In this document: piece after piece, positions 2,711 through 54,600 of the stretch
How the letters are laid out: each line of letters begins with the position of its first letter
Numbering within the stretch: position 1 is the first letter of the stretch
From: Chlorokybus atmophyticus
Lineage: Eukaryota > Plantae > Mesostigma and Chlorokybus algae
Reading direction: 5' to 3'
DNA length: 64,000 bases
Assembly (NCBI GenBank): GCA_009103225.1
Contig: RHPI01003124.1
Location: 1 to 64,000 of the forward strand
Notes under the pieces: generated by a model
Database searches by the model: none
The model's input: the letters and a program-made list of their open reading frames with translations, nothing else
Told to the model about the DNA's origin: nothing
Translations under genes and position numbers: made by a program

Positions 2711-4900
2711 ATGGCTGTTGGGGAGGGCAGCAGCCAATTGCCTGCTGCAGCTGATTGCTTCAGGGCCAAGGGCAACAATTTGCTGGGCCAGGTGACAGAC
2801 CAGCAGTTCTTGATAAAGGAGGAGTACAAGCATATGCGCACAATGCTGATGGTCAACCTGGAGAAGCTAAAGAAAGGAGATGTTAAGCAAGTGGCCACTA
2901 CCTCAAGGTATGAAGGGCAAGGACTTCAAGGTGAATGCGAGCACTGGCAAAAGCTCGATGAAGTATGTGAGGTGGTCTTGCAGCAGTCACTTTCGCTGGT
3001 CCTTGACGCAAACCAAACGCTCAGGTGAGCTCCTTTCTTGGAGACATCTGCTATTTGACATGAAATTGAATTCGGCTGTGTTGTAGTGAGCTTTCAAGCA
3101 TGTCGTTTAGCTTTCAGTTCACTCACTGTCTGCTTAGCTGTCTTGCCGTTGACAGTCCTTGCCCTGGTTGCTGTAGCTGTGTTCGTTCTTAATGATTCAG
3201 TGACCATTTGTAATATGCTGTATTTGAGGCTGTCTTCTGCTAGATGCCATCTTCCAACAGCTGAAAATGCTGTATTAGAGATGTCTTGCCATTGACAATC
3301 CTTGCCGTTGGTACTTTGCTGTACTCCTATCTGTGTTGCAGCACAAATCAAGCAGCATGTACTGGTGCTGCAGTACTCCTTTGGCGCAAAGCGCGGCAGT
3401 GGTACCGGGAAGAGCGTCCAAGAACGCAATGAGGCCAATAAACAAAGGCATGCCAGCGACAGGGAAGCTGCACAAGGCAGCCGCGCTGCTTAAGCTGAAG
3501 CTGGCTGGGGCATAACATTTTGTTTGGGGAGGGACATGAGGGCCAACCAGCAGGTGGTCATGCTTGCGCCTTTAACCGCTCTTCCTCTCACAAAAGCTTA
3601 ATACCGGGTCACTTGGCTCCAAGCGAGGTAAGCAACCATGGTGCTGTCGATCGACTGTCGGTCCTGCTGTATTGTTTTGCTGAGCTGCTGCCTCCATGCA
3701 TACTGGCTTCACACATGATGCCTGCTACTCTGAATGCTATTGTGCAAGTCACGACAGGGGTGCGGACGGATATGCTAAAGATCAGGTGTTCGACATTTGC
3801 AACAATGCAATAGTTGTTGGCGTCACCATCAATTCCGTATGCGAGCCAAACCAACCATTGAATGGCAATGAGAAGCGAGGATGGCAATCTTGCCGTTCAA
3901 CTACCTTTGAAGGAAAGGCATTTTCTCTATAGCACGCCGACAAGCAGCTGCCATGGTGGGCGTACTCTGGAGGTACATTGCTTGCTGTGGATATGCACAT
4001 GCTCCTGCTATGACTGTATGGTGTAGTGCATGAGCATTTCTTGTGTTAAACACAACAACATGCAGGGCTGGGAGATGGAGTGGCCCATGATGTTCTTGGC
4101 CAGCAGAGGCATCTGCCCCTGTAAGGCATGCGCTAACGATGAGCGCATTGCGGTGCCGGGTTGCATTAAGGACCTGCAGCCTACGCCCGCAGTCAGGCAC
4201 AGCACAGACACAGAGGTCAGTAGAGGCTGTTGTTAGGTTCCTGTCACATGATCAACGATCGCCAATGCAGTCCATTGATCACGTCTTGACAGTCGCCAAT
4301 GCATTGCATACCTGATTGCCAACAGCTGTGACAGTTGCCAGTGCATTCGATTGAATTGACATGACAGTCGTCAATGGACTGACCATTTTGTGTTCAATGC
4401 AGGCTGCTGGGGCGATCTTTGACTGGGAAGATAAAGAAGTCGCCGCCATGGACTTGCGGACACAAAGCCCAATGCCCCCACCAGAGAGGAGGCAATGGAC
4501 ATGTATGAGTACTACCACCACAACGACGATTCAAGGACCCCGATCGAATGGAGCGAGTGCCGAACGAGCTGATCTTGCGAGTCATTGTCAGCTTTGCTGC
4601 GAGGAAAAAGTGGTTAGTGGCGAACAAAGATGTTGAAGGAGGGTGCGAGTGGGGATCCAATCGCAAACTTCCAGGTATGCATACCTCACTGCAGCAGGTT
4701 ATTGACAGTCTTTTGCTAGTTTAAACGAGTGATCACCTGGCAATGCAGGGCTTTCGAGCGAGACAAAGAAGAGAAAGCCATTCCGACCCAAGAGGCAGTG
4801 GATGCGACAGCCCTCGTCATCCTCCTAGGTGGGTGGTTTACTATGCTATGGTCAAGTTATGTTTCAATGCAGTCTGTGTTGTGTAAGCACGTAATAGTAC
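2711..4900 (+). pseudogene. Degenerate multi-exon ORF of unknown function inside the TGACAG-motif/TIR-element block
   Basis: ATG at 2711 (MAVGEGSSQL...) ending at donor AG|GTGAG ~3024; further short ORF pieces at ~3333-3630, 3696-3932 and 4361-4636 with frame inconsistencies; no recognisable catalytic motif. Confidence 0.25.
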
Positions 4901-5140
4901 AATTGTTGTGCGGAGTTCAACAAGCGCTCGCTGAGTGTTTGCAAGAGGGGCTGTCGAGCAAGGCTGTCGCGGATGGCTTCAGCAGCGTGCAGTGCGTGTA
5001 GGAGACTGTAGGTACACTGGCCTGACATTGATGGGCTGTCGTTTGACAGTCCATTATAGCATTTTTGTGAATTGCATGCGTGGCGGATTGTATGCACCGG
5101 GCATGGTGCAGGCACCGGTGCTCAGACCATGTATGCACAA

Positions 5141-5410
5141 CAATGTTCGTATCCATAGACCATGCATGGTGCGACTGTCAATCAAACCATGTATGGTGCG
5201 TTGTCTGTTAGGACCATACATGATGCCACTTGTGGACCGTGTATGCACATCAATGTCCGTATCCATGGACCATGCATAGTGCGACTGTCAATCAGACCAT
5301 GTATGGTGCGCTGTCTGTTGGGATCATACATGGTGCCACTTGTGGACCGTATATAGCACAACAATGTCCGTATCCATGGACCATGCATGGTGCGACTGTC
5401 GATCAGACTG
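5141..5410. repeat. ~110-bp tandem repeat (about 2.5 copies) built from ACCAT(G/A/T)CATGGT-type palindromes
   Basis: Units start at 5141, 5251 and 5362 (CAATGTYCGTATCCATRGACCATGCAT...GCGACTGTC...). Confidence 0.9.
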
Positions 5411-6240: not shown

Positions 6241-7040
6241 TGCCCATAAGATATATGTGTTCGACGTAGGGGGGGGGGGGGGGGATNTCTTTTTGAGGGC
6301 AATTGGTGTGTACAGATGACTGCGCTGCTGCGGGGTTCGGTCGCTAGATGCCTGCACACATATGCCTGAGGATGGAAAACAACCCTCTTGGGGCACAAGT
6401 GCAAGCATAGCAGTTAGGTAGCAGCTAGTTGTATAGAAAATAAACACACCTTGCAATGCATTTCACCTTTGAGTTGGTCGTTTGATCGCTGCTGCCTTAG
6501 CTCTCCCGTGTATGCACCCTCACACCCTCACCATGCATGCGCAACCCCAACCCCACGCCCACCACTGCATAAAGCTAACACACTCCTCAACCTCTTAACT
6601 TAATGCCATTCACTCGTCTATATTACACACACACGCCACAATGCAACTCCCATGCCAATCACTCACACATGCACAAAGTCACAGTTTATATTCGGATTGC
6701 GTATGCGTTAAGTTGAGTTCTGGTCTAGACCTCATAACTACATCAAAATCAATGTGGAATGTAACTAGGTTTGTTGCATTGGACTTTTCATTTTGAGCCC
6801 CATGTCCTCAACAAAATTCAGCGCTTTGGCCAACCGTGTCACTATTCCGGAGCACTCAAAGTCAAGCCAACCATGTTTGCACGTTTATCATAGATACAAA
6901 CTATCTGAGTTTGGCGCCCTTAACTCTCAACCAACGGGGCTGATTCTTGGCGGTAGGCTCGAAAGGGCCCTCACCAAATTTCATTCCATTCGGACGCCAA
7001 ACTTGGAAGTTAGTACGCCAGCAGTAGGAAGTGTCCGGAT

Positions 7041-7226
7041 ATGGTCATTACTCGTTGAGGCTGACTATTGGTCAGCTAGATTGAAATAACAAACTGTTAA
7101 CCATTTAATTAGTACTAGTTGTTAGCGCCAGGGTTAATTGACACACACACGTGTCAACTTACTGTTCAGTCGCGGCCGTCACCTCAGCGGCGTCGCTGGC
7201 GGCGGCGCTGACGGCCGAAAGTTCGC
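7041..7226 (+). repeat. Split direct repeat A1 (copy A2 at 12772-12957)
   Basis: Direct comparison: identical except C/T at 7129. Confidence 0.97.
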
Positions 7227-7249
7227 TGAGAGTTTGGGGAGAGGGGACG

Positions 7250-8761
7250 ATGCCGCCAAAGAGGCGGGCCGCGGCTGCTGGCGGGCAGGGCGGCCGGAAG
7301 AAAAAGGCCGCTCAAGCTACGCAGCCTGAGCAGGCCGCTGGAGGTGAAGAAGCGGCCGATGAGGGGCCGACCAGCGAGGCCAGCCCAAGGCGTGCGCGCA
7401 AGGCTACGCAGGCTACGCAGGCTACGCAGCCTGCTGCGCCGCTAGCTACACGGCCGCCGCCAGCGTCACGCGCGGACAAAAGGCACGACGCTGTGACGCT
7501 GGCTCAGGGCGTGACCCTGGAAGGCGCTGCACAGCCTTCAGCGCTCGCTGTGGAGCTGCCCAAGGTGCCACGGCTTCGGCGCAGCAGAGGGGAGACCTCC
7601 TCCTCTTCAGATGAGGAGGAGGAGGTGAACAAAAAGAAAAGAGACAAGAAGAAGAACAAGAAGAGAAAGAAGAAGAAGGCGAAGACAATCACGTCATCCT
7701 CGTCTTCAACTTCCTCATTGTCATCCAGTTCTGATGAGGACAGCTCCGACTCTGGGGACAAACATACCAAGTACATCAAGCACACAGGCTTCATCAAGCG
7801 CATGTCCAGACAATCGGAGACGTATGCCTTGTGGGAAGAGTATCGCACGCGCAACCTCTCCACAGGCGTGAAGGGCTGCTTCGAGGCAATCGGTCGCGCC
7901 CTCTTCACAGGTCCGCCAGTTGCGCAGTTGGTGTCTTTTCTGTATCAGATGCTGCTCACGCACGTGCACGGTAGTGTCGACTTTGCCACAGCCTTTGCAA
8001 CCGGGGCACGGGATATCATTAACGATGCCCGCATCGATCGCAAGCACAAGGAAGCCAAGGTCATCCGCCGCCTGACAAAGCTCGCCAACAGCTTCCAGGG
8101 CAAGGCAGCAATGCAGAAAGCCAAGACCTCCATTCCTCAGTAAGTCTACTGTTCATCTGAGAAGTTGGCTGATGAGAATGCACAATGTGTGCATGTAATC
8201 TGCGTAGCAGCTGTCCAACTATAATGGTGCAATGCGCGCCTGTTCATGGACATGCACAATGAGTGCTTGCAGTCTGCTCGGCAGCTGCTCAACTATAATG
8301 GTGCAATGCGCGCCTGTTCACGAACATGCACAATGTGTGCATGCAGTCTGCTCAGCAGCTGCTCAGTTGTTATGGTGCAATGCGCGCCTGTTCAATAACT
8401 TGCACAATGTGCGCATACAGCATGCACGCCGGTTGAAGTCAGATATACATGGTGCTATTCGCGCCTATACATCAATATGCACATTGAGTGCATAACATAC
8501 ACACATCACTTGCAGTATCATGTCAATTGTGCAGTGCACACCGCGTTGACGCAATTGTGCGCATGCAGGCGCTCTGTCATAGAGGAGGGGAACACCCAGT
8601 TCCGGCCACAGCGTGGTCGAGGTCGCGGTTACGGCCGTGGCGGTCGCGGAGGTTATGGTCGCGGAGGAGGCTACTATGCTCAGCAGGCAGCACCCGCTCC
8701 ACAGGATGTTGCCTACTATGTGCCTGTGCAAGAGCAGCCACGCCTAGCCTTGCAGCAGTGA
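7250..8761 (+). CDS. Gag-like ORF1 of the YR retrotransposon, two exons (7250-8139, 8569-8761), Lys/Ser-rich N-terminus and RGG-rich C-terminus
   Basis: ATG at 7250 (MPPKRR...); donor CA|GTAAGT at 8140 and acceptor TGCAG| at 8568 join in phase 2 to give ...IPQRSVIEEGNTQFRPQRGRGRGYGRGGRGG...; TGA at 8759-8761. Confidence 0.7.
8178..8415. repeat. 74-bp tandem repeat (about 3.3 copies) inside the predicted gag intron
   Basis: (A/T)TGCACAATG unit starts at 8178, 8252, 8326 and 8400. Confidence 0.9.
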
Positions 8762-9006
8762 GTGGTGCCACTAGTCACGCGCGAGTAGCGCATAAGCAAT
8801 GCTATCTGAAGGTGGCCATGTGTATCATAGCAATGCGCAAGTGCGCATGTATGCATGTACGTGCGCCTATGCGCGTGTCTGTGTGTCTCGATGATGATGT
8901 ATCATAGTGTACATGACTCGGAGTGCAGCTCTCGACTGTCGTTACAATACCTACAGGAATTACATGTCCAGTACATTGCAACTAGCTTCATGTTAAAGGT
9001 GCACCC

Positions 9007-11352
9007 TTGCACAGTATAACCGAGTTGCATGTGCGCAGATGTAGCACATATGACGGAGTTGTTGCTGTTAGCGACATTGATGAGGATGATTGCATACAAG
9101 ATGAGTGGGATCCTGCAATGCCAGCATTGGCAATAGACCCTTTGTCCCCACCAGAGGCATACATTGACGTCATTCCACAAGTGAAACGCACTGTTGAAGT
9201 CATACCTGCTGAACAACAATGCAGCGACATTCGCTCCGTATATGCGGAGCTGTCACAGGTGACAAATGGTTTGGAAGAATGTCCCACCTCAGCAATGCAA
9301 TGGGCAGAACAACTACGCGCAGACACTTTGGATGCGGACAACTTTGTGGCAGCTTCTTTGCAGCAGCGGATAACCGCTTGGGCCACCTGGTTGCGACTGA
9401 CCATGCAAGGCAAGAAGAGCTTTGTGCTTGATTGGTTGCGTGACGGGTATCGCTTACAATGGGTAGGCACTCAAGCATCTAATACACGCAAGTGGGACGA
9501 AGTGCAAGCACTGTTGAAGGCCGAAGGCTTTGGAGATAATGATATTACAGCCATGCTGTCACGCAATTCTCCTACACCAGTTGTGTTTCGAAATCGCAAG
9601 TCCGCTTCCATACATGGCAGTTATGTTGTCAGTGAATTGGCCAACTTGGTGAAAACAGGAGCAATTTCTGTTGTTGATGCCAGTGATGTGGCAGTAGTCA
9701 CTGGCATAGGTGTGGTGGAACAAGAAAAGCGTTTGAGGCTCATTATGGACCTGAGATACATCAACCTCTTTTTGAGCCACATTCCCTTCAGATATGAGCG
9801 GTTGCGCGATGTGTTGTTATACACCAAGCGTCATTTCTGGCAAGTTACCGCAGATCTCAAGTCAGGCTATCATCATGTGCCCATTCACAAAGACAGTAAG
9901 CCTTACTTGGCACTGCGCTTTGCTGGGGTCACCTACAGGTGGAATGTACTGCCGTTTGGCCTGAATCAAGCCTGCTGGCTGTTTACAACCTTGATGTCGA
10001 CTGTGTTCACGCCTTTGCGGGCAATGGGTTTTCCCTGCCTTGCTTATATTGACGACATGCACTTCAGCCATTCCAATCGTTGGCATTTGTGTTGGCGCAT
10101 TCGCCGCGTGCTGCGTCTTTGGAAGTTGCTTGGGATATTTGTCTCTGTGAAGAAAAGCCAATTGTGGCCAGAGCAAGTTGTGCAGTTGTTGGGTCTGCTG
10201 GTGGACACGGTCACTGGCTCTTTTGTCATACCCGCCAACAAGCTGGCGAAGATATTGCAGTTAATGAAGGACATCACGCACGCGCCTGTACTGACCAAGC
10301 GTCACTTCGCACGCATTGCTGGCAAACTCATTGCGTTGAAGCTCGCATTTGCACCTGCAAGCATTTATGCTCGCCACCTGATGGGTCTGGCATTGGCCAC
10401 AGATGCATGGGATGACAGCATCGGTGATTTGAGCGCCTTCAGACAGTTTTGTGATTGGACTGCTGCGGGCTTGCAGACCTACAATGGCAATGCTTGGTGG
10501 AAGCCCCCTGTGCAGCTTGAGCTACATGTGGATGCATCCGGTACAATTGGTTGGGGGGCGACAGGACCTTGGCCTCGCATGGCAGGCAACTTCAAGCCTG
10601 AGCATATGACACTGCCTTCAGCGGTTAAGGAGGCACTAGCCTATGTGCAAGCATTTACCGAGGTTGCGCGCGCGTTTCATCTCCAGCACTGTACAGTGCG
10701 CATTATTGGCGATTGTCAACCAGCTATACAGATGTTGAACAAGCTGTCTGCATCAGACCCTCACGTGCTGCAGGGCTTACATCAATTATGGTCCTTGTGC
10801 TGGGAGCGTGACATAGCGCTGACATGTGTGTGGCGCTCTCGCGATGCGCTGCGCGATGCGGACGCATTGTCCAAGTTTGTGGATAGAGGGGACTGGTGTC
10901 TAACAGCAGATGCAACTGCGCATGTGCAGCAACATGTTGGACAACCGGCGTTGGATTGTTTTGCAGCCGATTGGAACAGCAAAACACCCGCTTATTTCAG
11001 CTACATACACATGCCTGGAAGTTTGGGAAATGCTCTAACTACAAATTGGCGTGACGTTCTTCAACGCTTGGGTGGCGGCTTTGTTTGGTGTCACCCGCCA
11101 TTGGCTCTCCTGCATGAAGCCATAGCATTATTGCAGTACTATCAGCTACCAGCTGTGGTGTTGGTGCCTGAATGGCACTCTGCTGTGTGGTGGCCAGTAT
11201 TTCACAATTGGCAATTCAGTTATATTGAGAGGTTGGGCTCAAGACCTGAGTGGTTTCAAAGGGGTGCGCGAGTACCCGCAAACAGCATCAACCCTGGACG
11301 CTACCCATACATTTGTGCTTTTGTGCACTGGGTAAGCATACCTCTCATGTAG
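9007..11352 (+). CDS. Pol: reverse transcriptase, RNase H and DNA adenine methyltransferase-like domain
   Basis: RT motifs KLRLIMDLRYIN, DLKSGYHHV, LPFGL, AYIDDM; RNase H HVDAS..., KEALA, GDCQ, ADALSK; MT-like ALDCFAADWN...WCHPPL...VPEW; 781 codons with no internal stop and no ATG near the 5' end. Confidence 0.95.
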   Translation: MHSITELHVRRCSTYDGVVAVSDIDEDDCIQDEWDPAMPALAIDPLSPPEAYIDVIPQVKRTVEVIPAEQQCSDIRSVYAELSQVTNGLEECPTSAMQWAEQLRADTLDADNFVAASLQQRITAWATWLRLTMQGKKSFVLDWLRDGYRLQWVGTQASNTRKWDEVQALLKAEGFGDNDITAMLSRNSPTPVVFRNRKSASIHGSYVVSELANLVKTGAISVVDASDVAVVTGIGVVEQEKRLRLIMDLRYINLFLSHIPFRYERLRDVLLYTKRHFWQVTADLKSGYHHVPIHKDSKPYLALRFAGVTYRWNVLPFGLNQACWLFTTLMSTVFTPLRAMGFPCLAYIDDMHFSHSNRWHLCWRIRRVLRLWKLLGIFVSVKKSQLWPEQVVQLLGLLVDTVTGSFVIPANKLAKILQLMKDITHAPVLTKRHFARIAGKLIALKLAFAPASIYARHLMGLALATDAWDDSIGDLSAFRQFCDWTAAGLQTYNGNAWWKPPVQLELHVDASGTIGWGATGPWPRMAGNFKPEHMTLPSAVKEALAYVQAFTEVARAFHLQHCTVRIIGDCQPAIQMLNKLSASDPHVLQGLHQLWSLCWERDIALTCVWRSRDALRDADALSKFVDRGDWCLTADATAHVQQHVGQPALDCFAADWNSKTPAYFSYIHMPGSLGNALTTNWRDVLQRLGGGFVWCHPPLALLHEAIALLQYYQLPAVVLVPEWHSAVWWPVFHNWQFSYIERLGSRPEWFQRGARVPANSINPGRYPYICAFVHWVSIPLM

Positions 11353-12516
11353 ATAACGATGCATGATAACAGGACTTCTCCATGTGCCTTGAGCTTGTAT
11401 TTCTTCCAGGGTGACACCGGCATGAAAGGCACTCTGTGCAGCACCACGCCGAAAGGAATGCAACCCCAGGTGCGGCCTATAAATGCCACATGCCTTGCAG
11501 CAACGCACGAAGGCATGATAAGCACAATTGCCTGACATGCAGTGTTCTTCCCACTTCAACCTATTCTTTGAAACAGGTCGGAATAAAGGACCGGCAGTGA
11601 TGGCAAAGGAGCTGTTGCGACAATAGGTCAGATAGGCGTAGAGCACTTCAGAGAACTCCACAGGGAGACCACTGCTACGCACTTGTATAGTAGGTGCACC
11701 TCCCGTGCAGTAATTTTTCAGATGTGTTAAAGTGGCCGCTAGCCCTGAGCTTGAATCAGCCGCTTGTATCTCGTGCATTTGCAAACGCGCACCTTCACCA
11801 CCCCGCTGCCATGTGCACCACAGGTATATGCATAATGTGTAGTCGCGCCAGAGCACAGCCTTGTCATGTGTGACAGTAGATGGCTGAGGTATGGTAGACA
11901 GCTGTTGCTGGAAGTGGTAGATCAGCGTGCGCATGTCATCCATCGCCAGTGGTACAGCAGCAATAGGTTGCACGCCTTGCCGAGCAGCAATCTTCGCATA
12001 CCCTTGGCGAAACTCGCGCACGTCTACAGACAGAAGCGGGTTGCCGACAGACCTGTCGCTGTCCCAAGGGCTGATGCGTCCCAGCAATCTGAAGGAGCAT
12101 GTGAGATGGGAAATGACATTGTCCAGTGTGGTGCTAGCGATCATGCGATGGCCATGGCGGTCAAGCCTGCGAGCTTTGCCAATGTGTGTGTCGGTCCAGT
12201 GCCCAGCAAGGTAGCTTGTGACGACTGCCGTGGTGACGTTGGCAACAGCAATACTCAGCTCAGGATGTTCAAGATAGTTGACAAACTCTTGCCACACGCG
12301 ATTACGTTGATTACGAGTCTCATCGCAGACAGCTTCACGGCTGATGCGCTCCACGTCTATCAGCGCTGCCGCAGCTCGCTCACACAGATTACAACTGGTT
12401 ATTGGTTGAGGACGAATTGCTGCGCGTGCGGTGCGTTGCACATCAGCGGTTTGCTGCAACCGCTGTGCAAAATCCATCTGCGGACACAGAGAAACCATTA
12501 CTCGACTGCTGAACAC
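11239..12516 (-). CDS. Tyrosine recombinase of the retrotransposon (antisense to pol)
   Basis: Catalytic motifs WQRGGE (R), LKN (K), HSFRRGAA (HxxR), GTW (W), MHRY (Y); intact 425-codon ORF; true start may be a downstream ATG (MVSLC or MDFAQ). Confidence 0.93.
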   Translation of the reverse strand: MFSSRVMVSLCPQMDFAQRLQQTADVQRTARAAIRPQPITSCNLCERAAAALIDVERISREAVCDETRNQRNRVWQEFVNYLEHPELSIAVANVTTAVVTSYLAGHWTDTHIGKARRLDRHGHRMIASTTLDNVISHLTCSFRLLGRISPWDSDRSVGNPLLSVDVREFRQGYAKIAARQGVQPIAAVPLAMDDMRTLIYHFQQQLSTIPQPSTVTHDKAVLWRDYTLCIYLWCTWQRGGEGARLQMHEIQAADSSSGLAATLTHLKNYCTGGAPTIQVRSSGLPVEFSEVLYAYLTYCRNSSFAITAGPLFRPVSKNRLKWEEHCMSGNCAYHAFVRCCKACGIYRPHLGLHSFRRGAAQSAFHAGVTLEEIQAQGTWRSPVIMHRYLHERYAYPVHKSTNVWVASRVDAVCGYSRTPLKPLRS

Positions 12517-12607
12517 AATGACCTTGACTGTTACTTTGGCAAGAAACTATACCAAGCTCTACACCTATAACCCTTACCTACTAATGTATGCTTGGAAGGG
12601 TGCGGTA

Positions 12608-12774
12608 GAATGTTTGATGCATCTACAGTTGTTCATCGTGTAAACCACAACTATAACGATGAATGCGTTGCATCGTAGGGCTTAGGTGTTCTTGCCAAAG
12701 TTGGACTGTAGGTAGGATTGTTGTTTGCGACAAAAGGAATGTAAATCGCTCATCGTGTGCAAAGTAGTATAATG
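12608..12774 (+). repeat. Split direct repeat B1 (copy B2 at 13187-13353)
   Basis: Direct comparison: identical over 167 bp. Confidence 0.97.
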
Positions 12775-15101
12775 GTCATTACTCGTTGAGGCTGACTATT
12801 GGTCAGCTAGATTGAAATAACAAACTGTTAACCATTTAATTAGTACTAGTTGTTAGCGCTAGGGTTAATTGACACACACACGTGTCAACTTACTGTTCAG
12901 TCGCGGCCGTCACCTCAGCGGCGTCGCTGGCGGCGGCGCTGACGGCCGAAAGTTCGCCCTTCCCGCCCCACCCTGTTGCGCCACTGCGCCGGACACATGC
13001 GCCCAGTCTCGATTGCGCTGGTCAGTGCGTACGCAATTGGTCATCAAACTGAGCTGATTGTGAATCCGAATGCGTTCATGACATGTAACGAAGATCCGGG
13101 TCATGTGAACAGCGTTTATCACCGTACGTTGGTGTCGTTACATCGACGATGATACGCGTCATTATCAACCACCGTCGGTTCGTCCCGAATGTTTGATGCA
13201 TCTACAGTTGTTCATCGTGTAAACCACAACTATAACGATGAATGCGTTGCATCGTAGGGCTTAGGTGTTCTTGCCAAAGTTGGACTGTAGGTAGGATTGT
13301 TGTTTGCGACAAAAGGAATGTAAATCGCTCATCGTGTGCAAAGTAGTATAATGCAAAATGCTCGGAGTTAGGGACCTAGAGACACGCCGCGGCATGCAAC
13401 GCATACTTTACCGCCAATCACGTCGTGGCACCGCTTCGGTGGCGCGCCAAAACCGTGCCAGAAAACCGCGTCTGACCACATGGCGGCTCCGTACACAGGA
13501 CCCCAAAATCGCTTTATGTAAAAGTGTCGCATGTACAGCACCTGACTGGTAGACGCTGTGGTTGAAGCACAGCCTGAGGTTCTGAGGCAGCCTGCGATTG
13601 CATGGAAGCAGGTTACATAACTCTGTACCGTGCACCGGCCAAGTGTACCGACAGGGGGGGGCGCAGATAGCTGTACGTACCTACTTGTATGCAAGTACTA
13701 CGCAGTACACTTTGGTGGATAAGCACGAGAAGGTTGCGCCCATTCTCTATTGTTTTTCAGCCATGCTTTTCCACATGCACAGTCCTCATGATGAAATGAT
13801 GCCTTGCATTATGCTTGGTATGCAAGTTGCCTAGCATGGTATGCTTGACAGTGTCAATGACTCTACGGCTAGGAAAGGCCTTTGGCAAATGGGGTTTATC
13901 TCAAATGCAAAGCAGGTTATGGGTCGTAAGTTCTGACTCATCACCTGATAAAACATTTGCCTTGTACGCATGGTATCAAGGCCCTTGGAATCCCCTTGCT
14001 CAAGTACGCATTACCATAGCAAGCCATACAGGATATCCTGCAAGACAAGCACGTGCAAAGCTGTCGTGAGCGATAACTACGCAGTGTCCAAAAGTCGCGC
14101 GCTGGCGCTTCATTACGTAACTTGTTGGTACTTTTGCCGCCAGAACGAAGCGCGTGATCAGCAACACTAGTTGACTACATCCAAAGACAAGAACGCTACA
14201 TCACCAGTTCTTAGCCGATCACTGCACAGACTGAAGCCGGTCACTTTGTCGGCCTTCTGCCGGCCACCTGGAAACAGCATTTGGCACTTGGCGGCTGCCT
14301 GACCGCATGAGCACAAAGGTTTTGCAAACAGTACGGCACGCAGGCAATCAGCAGCAGCGGCGTAGGTCACTGGTCTTGTGGAACCCATTGGTTTCCCACT
14401 CTCAGCGGCATTGTCGAGGTCAGAAACAGTGTCAGTGCGTAAAGGCCGCGCATGCACACGGCCGGTTGCCACTGCCGCGGACGGCGGTAAGACGGCAGGA
14501 GGACGACCACAACAACGTCCAAGACGACGACGTCGCCGACCAAGCTTCTTGCCGGCAGCTGTCGCTATCACCTTTTATCTAAGCAGCAAAATTCGCTGGC
14601 AACGCTTTGTTTATCAGGCGTTGTTCGTATCTTTCTGTCCAGCTCCGTACTTGCTTACCAAGTAGTCTAGCAAGCTGGAGGTTGAGCTTGATGTGACAAG
14701 CAGCGTGTCGATGGGTATATGCTACTGAGCTGCAACGTTATCTTGAGGTAGTTTGGTAGCTTGTTGCTAACACCTGAAGCTGAGGCGGCAATGGCTGCCG
14801 GCGGAAGCTGTCGGCTGCTGGCCATGGGCAGGAGCTCCGCATGCCTGCTGCTGTTGAGCTTCTGCTTGCTGCTGTCGTGGGCGGCGGAGCCGTCCGCTGC
14901 CGCACCAAGTATGTTTGCAATGTGGTTGCAATTTAATGCTTGCTAATTGTCCAAGCTGGCTTGCAAGTTCTGGCCGCAATTAGCATGCAATCTATGCGCG
15001 CCGTTGTTTTGCCAGTTTCCTCTTTGTTTGGTTCTCAACAATGCATGCACCGGTTTGTGTCCGTCAACAGGTATGCATGTTAGCGGTGTACTTCAATAAG
15101 C

Positions 15102-18100
15102 ATGGCTGTTGGAGGTCATCTTGCTCACCAAGTCAGCTGCCACTGCTACCCATCTATCTTGTCAAACTACAGCCCAAGTTGTTGTATCAACACCGGGCAG
15201 CGTCGCACATTGCATGCTAGGATTGTTGCGGCAGCTAACAGCACATATTGCACACATATTGTCGATCAACCTGCGGCTGTGATGGTGACGTCGCTGGTTC
15301 CCTTGCTGCAGAGATAAAGGCAAGAGTCAGCGCTCAACTGACCATGAATGTCAAGCAGGTACACTCAAATGTAGCGGAGGCCTTCAGCTTGTTGCTGAGC
15401 ATCATGCGGCGGGGCGCGGTCGACAGCTTGCGGACCTGCCGGCCATTCATCGGCATGGGCTTGGAGACTTGCACGTTGTGATTAATGCACTTGCATATGA
15501 AGATGCTGAAGCCCTGCTTGTTGAGTTGGAACCTTTGGGCTTCGAGTTGTCTGGAAGGTCAGCGCATGGTGGTGTATTACAGCGTTTCTTTCTGTTCTTG
15601 CACCCAAGTCATCCTGCAACCTTGACTGTCCGACAGCTTGCGGACCTGCCGGCCATTCATCGGCACGGGCTTGGAGACTTGCACGTTGTGTTTAATGCAC
15701 TTGCAGTATGGTGCATGAGCACCCGTCGAGTTAGTGTTAATGATGACGATGATGATGATGTTGATGGAGTGGTTTGTTCTTCTTTGTTTAGGCATGGTCT
15801 GTTGTTGAGTGGCATATTGCCAAAAGGAGCCATCAGTGCTTTGGAGGACTTGGAGCAGTTGCGGCATGCGGACCGGTCGTATCCGGCTGCACGAGCAATG
15901 GGTATTGCGGCAACAGCTGGCGACCAGGCAATATATACAGACGTGCTCCGCCAGGCTTACAACACCACAGGTACAGTTAGTTGTCAGATCAACCTTCCGC
16001 TACTGATTATCCTCGTATAGCTGGCCGTCTCACAGTTTTGTCTCTCAGGAACGGGAGCCAAGATTGCCATCATCAGTGACGCCTTCAACTCACAGAATGG
16101 GCTTGCCGCGGTCAGTGCATAGAGTTCCTAGCAAGTCTCACAACGTTCCTCAAAGCAACAACAGTGTACACGTTGTGACAAATGTCATCTCACACTGTTG
16201 TTGTGCCTACCAGGACATGTTCACGGGAGACATGCCCAGTGGAAGCAATTCAGTGGTTGTTCTCAGGGAGCTGTCACAAGTGCTGCAGGGACGCGATGAG
16301 GGGCGTGCAATGCTTCAGGTATGTGCGTCTCCTGCTCATGCAACTGGTTCCATTGTGCTGCATACTGCTCTCGCCATGCTATCCACGAGCATGGTTTTAT
16401 TCGATGTTGCTTTCTTACTTGGCTTTGCAGATTGTATATGATGTGGCCCCTGGGGCGACGCTATACTTTTTAAGTGGCTTTGCGGGTGCGGCCAGCATTG
16501 TGAGTGGGTTGCCTGCAATCTATGCGGCAGGAATTGATATCATCGTCGATGATCTTGGGTTTTATGAGGTACGATTGCGTATGCCATACCGGCGTAAAAT
16601 GGGCTTGAAGAGTACTTGCGTGCACATTTACATGGTGATGCTTGCTGTTGTGTGCGTTTGTGCCAAGTCCTATGTCCATTCAGGAACCATTCTTTATGGA
16701 CGGAGTACTGGCACAAGCTGTCGACCAGGCCTTTGCGACAGGTCTCATGTGGTTTTCTGCGGCTGGTAACGATGCAGGTACGACTGGAATTGCACTGCAA
16801 CCCACTCTACCTTGTGGTGCTTGTTTCAATGTGTGTTTTGGCAAAGCTTATCGAGTGGCTTGTATGGGGCGATAGATAATTCTTGGGAGGTCAGCTGTCC
16901 CAGTGGCTGCTCCTTCACGGGCCCAGGCAACTCTTTCGCCTTCAGTCGTGGTGTGTATCGACAAGAGATTTCCATTTGTTACTTTTGCACTGTCACCTTC
17001 GTGTTTCAGGTATGTGAGAGCGCTCATGTATCTCTTGTAACAGTGTTGCTGGGTCATGCAGTAGCGTTGTAGTTGACATGCATTCTAGTGGTTGATGGTC
17101 ATGCTTCGGCCTGCTCAAGAATCCATGTAGTGTGATAGCATTCAGGCTCATATACGGAACAATACATCAATAACCACACCTGTGCAGTGGGATGAGCCAT
17201 TTGCTTCTGCCACCAATGGTGTAGTTGGATCGTCCAGTGATCTTGACATTGCCTTGTACAGCGGGACTGGGGTGAGCATTTGGCTGCTGTATCTCCCGTG
17301 CATCAATGTATCTTCCCTTTCCTCTTCTGCAATGTCAATACACACAAATGTTTAGTGCGTCTGAATTGACACCATGCTATAGGTTCTGCTTGCAAGCAGC
17401 CGCGAGGACAACATCAAGTCGGGAAATGCCTTTGAAGTGCTCACATACACCTGCTCTCCTGATGTGGAGGTGCCATGCTTGGGTTACCTGGAGTTCATTC
17501 TCACCAGGGGAAGCCCGCCCAAGAGAATGAAGTATCTTCTAGTGGTAAGCCAATCTGTACACTGCACAGCCTTGTTGCACAGGGCAATAGTCGCCAATTG
17601 TGCTACAATGGTACGTTGCAGAAGTGCAATGACGTTGGTCAGTACGATTAAACTGCTGGCAAGCCTGTAAGTTTGGGAAGCGTGCAGACTGTCTGTGATG
17701 TCTGCAGTCATCTGGCGTTGGCGTGTCAGGCCCCACCAACCGTGCCAACTACGGTGCTGGCACCATTTATGGGCACCCGAACTCGCTTGGAGCCATTGCT
17801 GTAGGTGCTGCGGATTACAAGGATACCCAAGCCTTCGGCACTTGTCCACCCGTGAAGGCGAGCTTTTCCAGGTGCGGACGGTTCACTAGGGCTGATGCAA
17901 CCTGCAATGAGTGCCATTAACACTGTATGCAGTGTTGGAGGCGTGCCCATCCTCTTCAGCAAAAATGGCACAAGACTTGCAAGACCCGAAATACGACTCA
18001 AGCCCGATGTGATTGGACCAAGCGGTGCAGACGTATCCTTCTTTTCTATTGGCGTGACAGCTGACATACTGAAACCCTGCACTCTCCCGAACTTCATCGG

Positions 18101-51609: not shown

Positions 51610-54600
51610 CAATCTACCCCCGCCAAGAGAATTCGTTTCAAGAGAATAACCCCGTTAGTATCATAAAAAATGAGATTACCAAACGTCTTCACAGGCAAAT
51701 TACGCATCTCAAGAGAATATGACTAACCGCGAAGAGCATATCTTTTTTCCTTGGAAAAATCGTAAGTTTAAGTGAGGATATGCTTGTATCGGGGGGTGCA
51801 AGTGTGATGCATACGGCGCACAGCGTGATGAGCATGATGGGCGTGATGCATGTAATTCACTGTATCTTAATGTAACTTAGCGTTGCAAAGCATCACCGCC
51901 GCCACTTCGGACGGCAGCGACGGCGGTGAGGAGACGCAGGCTGGGGGCAGCGATGGCGGTGAGGAGACGCAGGCTGGGGCAGCGGTGGCGGGCGGGGTAT
52001 AGTTGATGGGCATGCCGCTCAACTTGTAGGGCGGCTAGCTGGTCACGGCTGTTGCAGCGCCGCTGCTGGCCTCGCACAACAAGTAAGGGTTTGCAACGCA
52101 CATGCAGTGCATGCACGTACATGCAGTGTGTGATTGTGTATGCACAAACAGTAATGTAGTGTGTGATTGTTGTTGTAGGTCAACATGGCCGCACAAATCA
52201 AGCGTGATAACCTTCCTTTAAAAGACAAGCAGCGCATCCTTGAGTTGTGTGACGCCAATGAAGGTCTTAAGCAAGCGGACTTGATTGCTATTATTAGAAC
52301 TGAGTTGAAGTTCACTATCAAGCAGAGTTCGCTCTCCAAACTTCTCAATAAACAGCGACAGCAAATAGCCGATGCGTTGGCTGTGGGTGGCAAGCATGCG
52401 GCCAAAAACAAAAGGATGCGGATTGGGGCTCATCCCAAGTTAGAAGATGGATTGTATGAGTGGTTTGCACAGGCCAGAGCACGCAATGCGTTGATTACTG
52501 ATGCATTGTTGATGGAGAAAGCATCAGATTTTGCCAACCGGTTAGGAATAGAAGGGTTCAGCGCTTCGCAAGGTTGGGTGCACCGTTTCAAAAAGCGTCA
52601 TTCAATTGCTGCGAAAACTCTGCATGGCGAAGCAGCTGATGCAGATGCGGAGGGTGTGGATGCAGCTCGTAGTAGACTGCCTTTAATCTTAGCAAACGAT
52701 CGCATCATTGATGTATGGAACATGGATGAGAGCGGAGTGTTCTATAGAGCACGTCCGCGTCGTACATTAGTAGTTGCATCGGAGGAAGCTAGAGGGGGCA
52801 AGCGAGAGAAGGACAGAATCACGGCAGTTTTGTGTGTCAACGCTGACGGTTCGGGAGGAAAAGCGACCAGTCCTCATCATTGGCACCTACAAGCGTCCGA
52901 AGTCCTTTGGCAGCACTTGGACGCCAATCCGCATTGGCGTTGACTACGACTACAACAAGAAGGCTTGGATGAACTCCGGGGTGAGTGCATGTGCATATGC
53001 AACTTCATTTGCAGCTGCATATGCATTAATTGTGCATGTCACTTACTGTTGTGATGCTTGCAACAGGTCTTCAGCCGGTGGTTGTGTGCCTTCAATTTAG
53101 ATATGAAGCTACAGAACCGCCACATCTTGCTGCTGATGGACAACTCCTCAACGCATGCCTGCGTGTATGCAGAACAGGGCTTGGAAGAAGGCTTTCGAAC
53201 GCTGTCACTAAGCCACATAAAGTGTCTGTTTCTTCCGGCCAACACTACATCCAGAGTCCAACCTTTGGATGCTGGCATCATCGCTGCATACAAGGCCAGG
53301 TAAGTCACAATACATGCCGTGTTATGAACAAACAGAGCCTTTATTTCTATCAAGATATCAGAATTTTTGGGTTGGGGGGCCCCCCGGCCCCCCAAACCCC
53401 CCTTGTTTGTCAGAGTTTGTTGTGGTGTACATCATGTTGTTGATGGTCTTCATGTGACGGTACAAAGGAAGCTTGTGCAGCATCTTCTCGCAGCAATATG
53501 ATGCAGACCCCACCCTCGACTTGAGTAAAGTGAAGGTGCAGATGCGTGAAGCCATCATGTGGAATCGCGAGGCGTGGGACGAGCTGACTGCCACAACCAT
53601 TGCCAACTGCTGGAGGAAGACTGGCATTACCCCCGCGGAATGGTATGAGGCCACTCCCGCCGACACCGAGCGCATCATTCACGCGGTGATACACGACATG
53701 GGTGAGATGATGCAGCGTTTGCCCATTCCACGTGCTGACATGCTCTCCGCTGACGAGTTCGTCGAGGCGGATGATCATCTTCCTACTGTAGCTAGCCAAT
53801 GTGACGAGGACATTTTGATGAGTGTTGGGGCACTGACTCCACGGACGGACGACACCGCCGATCTCGACGCGGAAGGTGTGTACGCGTGCATGCACTCCGT
53901 ATGTAGCTTTCCTTCTCATAATTTTCACATAACACATTGCAGATGATGATGAGTGCGCACCGCCGGTTGTGACGACATTCGGGTGTCTTCAGCACTTGGA
54001 CAGTATTGAGGCCTTCGTGGCTGGCAGTGAGTGCTTTATGCCTGAGCATCTACAGTTGGCGTTGCGGCACATCCGCAATGTGGTGATTCGTCATCAGCTA
54101 TTTGGCTCCTCGCACCAGACACGCTTGCACGAGTTATTTCATGCCTCGAGCAATGAGGCATCAACATCACACGCAGCCACCACCAGTGCAACGGCCGAAG
54201 ACCCTCTTGTAGTTGATGACTAATGGCTGAGATGTTTGATGTACATGCGAACTTTCATTATGTTCAAGGCATGAGACATGCATGCAAGTGTGCATGCTTT
54301 GCATCATACACAAAAGTCAACACACTGAAACACATTTCAAGCCCATTGACATGCTTAGCAGATGTACATTAAAAAATGCATTACAACCGCAGCATCTTGG
54401 CTGCATGTCACACAAATGGCAAGAATGTTGTTTGGATTCATCTGACTATAGCAACGCAATTGTATGGTATTCAAGCAAGAATGTAGCAACATGGGCATTG
54501 TTGAGCTTCATTGCTCACCATGCTAAAGCGAAAAAGTATTATACACAAGACCCCGCTAATAGCATATTTATGCTCTTGGCAGTCAATAGCATATTATGCT

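Follow-up and report, generated by a model that had tools for sequence, protein, structure and literature searches.

A retrotransposon of 6.3 kb lies at positions 7041-13353 of the 64,000-nucleotide stretch of Chlorokybus atmophyticus DNA analyzed here (assembly GCA_009103225.1, contig RHPI01003124.1, positions 1 to 64,000 of the forward strand; hereafter the window), and the subject of this study is how this element could make its Gag-Pol protein. Its gag and pol reading frames are separated by two intervening sequences that carry the signals of spliceosomal introns, with a short exon-like stretch encoding an RGG box between them. On the sequence, we consider it reasonably probable that both are spliceosomal phase-2 introns, that their removal gives a Gag-RGG-Pol fusion while their retention gives Gag or Gag-RGG, and that the unspliced RNA is the copied template. 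The use of these splice sites, partial splicing as what sets the ratio of Gag to Gag-Pol, and the choice of template are parts of this picture that we infer. A broader proposal, which we put forward tentatively and at somewhat less than even confidence, is that an element of the DIRS order has come to use host splicing instead of frameshifting or readthrough, making Gag, Gag-RGG and Gag-RGG-Pol, and possibly also Gag-Pol, in ratios given by splice-site strength, and that solely the intron-bearing RNA is reverse transcribed.

The element and its predicted products

The element is intact and is bounded by split direct repeats. Its features are listed below by position and strand, with a slash marking a splice junction; ORF stands for open reading frame and RT for reverse transcriptase.

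7041-7226, plus strand: A1, left split direct repeat and 5' leader, 99.5% match to A2
7250-8139, plus strand: exon 1, designated Gag, 296 codons and 2 bases by translation
8140-8568, plus strand: proposed intron 1, 429 nt, phase 2, GTAAGT donor, ATGCAG/G acceptor
8178-8420, plus strand: 74-bp tandem repeat within intron 1, 3.3 copies, 86% matches, non-coding in character
8569-8757, plus strand: proposed exon 2, RGG/RG box and then a Q/P/Y-rich tail, 189 nt, 63 codons, phase 2 at both ends
8758-9014, plus strand: proposed intron 2, 257 nt (281 nt with the acceptor at 9038), phase 2, GTGAGT donor
9015-9038, plus strand: stretch between two in-phase acceptors, CACAG/ (9014) and GCGCAG/ (9038), 24 nt, exon or intron by acceptor choice
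9039-11352, plus strand: proposed exon 3, RT-RNase H-methyltransferase ORF, Pfam RVT_1 and weak Dam matches, first in-frame ATG at 9118
11239-12516, minus strand: tyrosine recombinase ORF overlapping the end of pol, weak Pfam Phage_integrase match, by translation
12608-12957, plus strand: internal repeats B1 (12608-12774) and A2 (12772-12957), by repeat comparison
13187-13353, plus strand: B2, right terminal repeat, 100% identical to B1

This is a young and intact copy, with repeats that are 99.5-100% identical and all ORFs intact. The 778-aa pol ORF matches Pfam RVT_1 at 3.8e-16 and, weakly, Dam at 0.011, and from residue 114 onward it aligns with DIRS/PAT pol proteins at about 30% identity, through the methyltransferase (MT) region. 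The antisense ORF of 425 aa has its weak Phage_integrase match at 9.9e-05. A pol with RT, RNase H (RH) and methyltransferase, a tyrosine recombinase (YR) and repeats in the arrangement A1...B1-A2...B2 are what place an element in the PAT/kangaroo part of the DIRS order, and from these sequence features we classify this one as a PAT/kangaroo-like tyrosine-recombinase retrotransposon. The B1-A2 block stands after the antisense recombinase, with 229 nt separating A2 from B2. This order is unlike the scheme published for kangaroo (PMC4157794): either the element represents another PAT subgroup, or the published scheme is a simplification.

In the mechanism that we propose, one sense transcript would begin in or after A1. 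Translated without splicing it would give Gag (297 aa), ending at the TAA in the first donor. Removal of intron 1 would extend Gag by a 63-aa RGG tail with a putative role in nucleic-acid binding, ending at the TGA in the second donor, and removal of both introns would give a Gag-RGG-RT-RNaseH-MT fusion of about 1,130 aa. The unspliced transcript would be the template for reverse transcription, as it must be if genomic copies keep both introns.

Splice signals, phases and composition

The signals themselves can be read directly from the DNA. The gag ORF starts at the ATG at 7250, and the sole ATG from 7041 up to this start is at 7041 itself. Its last full codon is at 8135-8137 and is followed by CA at 8138-8139; G8140 completes a CAG codon, and the stop TAA (8141-8143) lies inside the donor GTAAGT (8140-8145), which makes the unspliced ORF 297 aa long. 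Intron 1 would end with ATGCAG at 8563-8568, preceded by a branch-like TTGAC motif at 8546-8550, and joining CA to the G of exon 2 gives Q, followed by RSVIEE. Exon 2 in turn ends in CA, with the stop TGA (8759-8761) inside the donor GTGAGT (8758-8763). For intron 2 there are two candidate acceptors, at 9013-9014, where the junction reads H-ITEL, and at 9037-9038, where it reads Q-CSTY. Both enter in phase the RT-RNaseH-MT frame, whose open stretch runs from 8986 up to its stop codon (11350-11352). Both candidate introns thus have a GT donor consensus and an AG acceptor, and their predicted removal keeps a single frame. Skipping of exon 2 would likewise preserve the frame, since its length is divisible by three and the two introns share phase 2. 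An initial annotation of this DNA had placed the donors at 8139/8140 and 8757/8758 with gag-side stops inside them, the first acceptor at 8568 and two phase-2 acceptors at 9014 and 9038, and on the sequence all of these positions and phases are correct; its junction peptide IPQRSVIEE was reproduced as well.

How often a stop falls in such a donor can be estimated from the window. A stop inside GTRAGT occurs at 12 of the 551 ends of ORFs of at least 60 aa, both present cases included. This frequency, about 2%, is an upper bound, since real host exons are probably among the 12. Two such stops in succession then have a chance of approximately 3-5 in 10,000, and on their intron sides both donors match the consensus perfectly. 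The stop in the donor ensures immediate termination when the intron is retained. However, any phase-2 intron whose donor is GTRAGT has this feature, which is not by itself an adaptation.

The composition of the intervening sequences also sets them apart. The GC content is 0.60 in exon 1, 0.48 in intron 1, 0.635 in exon 2 and 0.49 in intron 2, and shifts in both GC and 4-mer composition coincide with 8140, 8569 and 8758. The word TGCA occurs 4.5 times per kb in exon 1, 42 times per kb (9-fold more) in intron 1 and 20 times per kb in intron 2, and ATGC and CATG follow the same pattern, being several-fold higher in both intervening stretches. The ATGC/TGCA-rich character attributed to these sequences at the outset is therefore borne out, together with the drop in GC. 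A single verified host intron is available for comparison, at 16569-16683 in the neighbouring subtilase-like gene. It is 115 nt long and phase 0, reads GAG/GTACGA...TTCAG/G and joins ...DDLGFYE to EPFFMDG...; its GC content is 0.48 and its acceptor resembles those of the candidates. The lengths of the candidates, 429 and 257-281 nt, fit those of volvocine introns (the Volvox median is 358 bp; PMC4378016), a group that may not be that of the host. We also considered a packaging signal in the introns and rejected it: folding energies were no better than those of dinucleotide shuffles (z -0.66 and -0.56), and an Rfam search with them gave no match.

Intron 1 may hold one more signal. TGTAA is the volvocine poly(A) signal. 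On the sense strand from 7041 to 12638 it has a single site, at 8194-8198 in intron 1, 51 nt past the gag stop; further sites are in B1 and B2 (12639, 12740, 13218 and 13319). This is a weak hint in the sequence that a gag-only mRNA could arise by intronic polyadenylation, as the count of 1 against 4.3 expected is not significant (P = 0.07).

Several points weigh against the splicing proposal. The exon sides of the donors (TCA/ and GCA/) depart from the usual MAG/, with A at -1 in both. In-phase AG dinucleotides with long open frames downstream were common at every donor tested, so the acceptors add little, and we dropped them as evidence for splicing. Two introns that are both phase 2 are a 1-in-9 event by chance, and thus the stops in the donors may be incidental. 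Ahead of the ATG at 9118, pol is open for just 44 codons, a length that would arise by chance with a probability of about 0.12. Contigs from other copies (described below) are unspliced, DNA-like and without joints, and are uninformative on splicing. Finally, no close relative or diverged copy was found in protein or metagenome collections, where the best pol matches are about 30% identical.

Some of these points would be equally at home with a simpler view of the introns, namely that they are real but constitutively spliced, serving expression in an intron-dependent host, with a minor unspliced nuclear fraction as the template and no role for splicing in setting the ratio. The immediate in-frame stop upon retention is what any phase-2 GTRAGT intron would give, the shared phase could be the chance event noted above, and relatives of the element express a single Gag-Pol ORF without ratio control. 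Nevertheless, we regard this as an unlikely explanation. The weak exon sides of the donors and the symmetric cassette exon suit regulated or partial splicing better, and Ogre, the closest precedent, is spliced in only a subset of its transcripts (PMC6317226), although neither of these is direct evidence.

Possible unspliced routes to Pol, relatives and other copies

Frameshifting and readthrough are the usual candidates for producing Gag-Pol, and we rejected both. Stops occur in all three frames within 8141-8396 and again within 8759-8994, so no single frameshift or readthrough event can join the ORFs. This leaves independent initiation of Pol. The initial annotation described the pol ORF as lacking an ATG, which overstates the case, as an in-frame ATG at 9118 precedes all of the conserved domains. 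In the absence of splicing, real stops would end Gag and perhaps also a small RGG protein, Pol would start from this ATG by way of a subgenomic transcript, internal entry or reinitiation, and the GT...AG pairs would be coincidental. Such an arrangement would find company in DIRS-1, which uses separate, overlapping ORFs (PMC3266345), and no spliced RNA was seen in the contigs of other copies, which are DNA-like. A dedicated promoter or an internal ribosome entry for pol is possible. On the other hand, the 200 nt that precede 9118 contain nine out-of-frame ATGs, which makes scanning initiation from an upstream-starting transcript unlikely. The RGG ORF has no credible start of its own: the single in-frame ATG upstream (8477) is within the intron-like sequence. 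The coincidence of two consecutive stops in perfect GTRAGT donors would have to be accepted, as would the agreement of the composition borders with the proposed splice sites. With these points taken together, we think it quite improbable that the element is expressed with no splicing at all.

A different concern is that the copy might be defective, a once-continuous gag-pol ORF having been broken by insertions (a minisatellite and other sequence) in an element that is now non-autonomous. Intron 1 is in fact largely the 74-bp tandem repeat, and relatives do carry continuous gag-pol ORFs. However, the repeats are nearly identical, the three long ORFs and the recombinase are intact, and the insertions would need to start and end exactly at consensus splice signals with the phase kept. 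The other copies also bear on this. One public run, X1, shares sequence with the element, in contigs of unspecified kind that are 1-2% diverged, colinear with the window and carry the same intervening sequences. These sequences are therefore a trait of the family rather than damage to a single copy, and we judge a broken gag-pol ORF to be very improbable. The X1 contigs cover both ends of intron 2 colinearly (8631-8902 and 8915-9359), and there is depth over the bin containing donor 1, while acceptor 1 is uncovered. Among the variants listed, none changes a splice site, and synonymous changes are enriched among the differences, making up 8 of the 18 in pol and 13 of the 22 in the recombinase. 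In one X1 copy a G>A change at 12504 creates a stop at codon 5 of the longest recombinase ORF, which suggests that the true start is a downstream Met (residue 7 or 14). The window holds no second copy of the element, and metagenomes scanned with protein queries and with a DNA word from exon 2 gave no match.

The two parts of the proposed Gag differ in what can be said of them. The product of exon 1 has a disordered, K-rich and S-rich N-terminus and a helical C-terminal domain. It has no Pfam match and no homologue in a protein search (the recombinase likewise found none), and an exhaustive HMMER search with the C-terminal domain returned as its sole match an unrelated repeat protein. A structure model from the single sequence is all helical with a pLDDT of 57.6, a low confidence that is too poor for a fold search. 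We call this product Gag by analogy, given where it lies and that relatives have Gag at this place. In exon 2 the RG repeats use mixed synonymous codons and there is no tandem repeat in the DNA, which points to selection on the protein. Exon 2 also has no sensible start of its own, and in the proposed mechanism it would be translated as an extension of Gag.

The relatives suggest what this extension could do. In three distant ones (P0003, P0023 and P0025) Gag with a CCHC knuckle and RT-RH-MT are in one ORF, and the zinc knuckle, with the helical Gag region on one side and pol on the other, occupies the place that the RGG exon has here. By this analogy the RGG box may be the nucleic-acid-binding module of a Gag without a zinc finger, standing in for the zinc knuckle of the relatives.

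Two further distant DIRS-like elements have other layouts. In one (L001, region 817-1387) the open pol frame reaches 443 nt back from the gag stop (1257-1259), as in the classical overlap and frameshift arrangement, and the same strand encodes the recombinase. In the other (L002) an in-frame TGA (5147-5149) between gag and pol makes a readthrough layout. The latter element, on an AT-rich metagenomic contig, also has its Gag CCHC knuckle (CFK / CGEFGHLSVSC) split, in the region 4657-5149, by 408 nt that read ATAAGT...TTCTAG. This looks like either an intron with an altered first base or a read error in the 2.4x long-read data.

Two observations concern the rest of the window. An ORF at 52185-52943 has the Tc5 transposase DNA-binding domain (HTH_Tnp_Tc5, 2.7e-17) and by this match probably belongs to a pogo/Tc5-like DNA transposon. 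A short way upstream of the element, at 6265-6290, a run of about 17 G is followed by a single N, which looks like an assembly or sequencing artefact.

Known systems and what splicing would mean

Retroelements are copied from RNA and are hence expected to lose introns. The donors, phases, all-frame stops, composition borders, start-less exon 2 and young intact copy nevertheless fit the two-intron reading on the sequence, and we find it plausible as the most economical account; the interpretation in the initial annotation is thereby supported in part. The closest likeness is to Ogre, a Ty3/gypsy long terminal repeat (LTR) element of legumes, which has an intron between its gag- and RT-containing ORFs and keeps it in genomic copies, as would be predicted here. 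The differences are considerable. Ogre belongs to the LTR order, has a DDE integrase and a protease and lives in land plants, whereas the present element combines a tyrosine recombinase with two candidate introns and a cassette RGG exon, and lacks a protease. Additionally, the splicing of Ogre was shown by experiment, while that of the present element is predicted only. An Ogre-like, splicing-dependent expression of Gag-Pol in a green-alga tyrosine-recombinase retrotransposon is, on the sequence, plausible.

Among DIRS-order elements the nearest are kangaroo of Volvox carteri and TOC3 of Chlamydomonas, which share the RT-RH-MT pol, the A1...B1-A2...B2 repeats and a Gag without a zinc finger, the last being stated for kangaroo and the TOC elements in PMC4157794. 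Kangaroo shares the inverted recombinase as well, although its internal repeats lie between MT and YR (PMC4157794) and not after the recombinase as they do here. The initial annotation had suggested that introns joining gag and pol might be new for the DIRS order. In the literature covered, which leaves aside the original kangaroo description, we found no report of such introns in a DIRS-order element and no statement on introns in kangaroo or PAT-like volvocine elements. The novelty is nonetheless limited to the order, given that the strategy was already established for Ogre.

Other retroelements use splicing or keep introns in ways that help to define what is proposed here. As with retroviral env, the Ty1/copia elements copia and BARE1 splice their own transcript and so adjust Gag relative to Pol: they splice to a gag-only RNA, and only the unspliced RNA is packaged and copied (PMC3735527). 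There the splicing removes or disables pol for more Gag, while in the present element splicing would be needed for any Pol. Penelope-like elements also retain spliceosomal introns in their genomic copies, and are described as "highly unusual among retroelements" for this (PMC8557442). Their introns are mostly in the 5' UTR (untranslated region), are tied to an unusual transposition mechanism and do not join gag to pol (PMC8557442).

Elements that keep introns, such as Ogre, the Penelope-like elements and the retroviruses, show how the RNA used for translation is separated from the RNA used for copying. If the proposal made here is true, this strategy would extend to a third retrotransposon order and to the green algae, and the annotation of such elements needs models that are aware of introns. 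If in addition the layout is common to several families in the genome, it would mean that retroelements across this lineage have adapted to a host that is rich in introns and depends on them.

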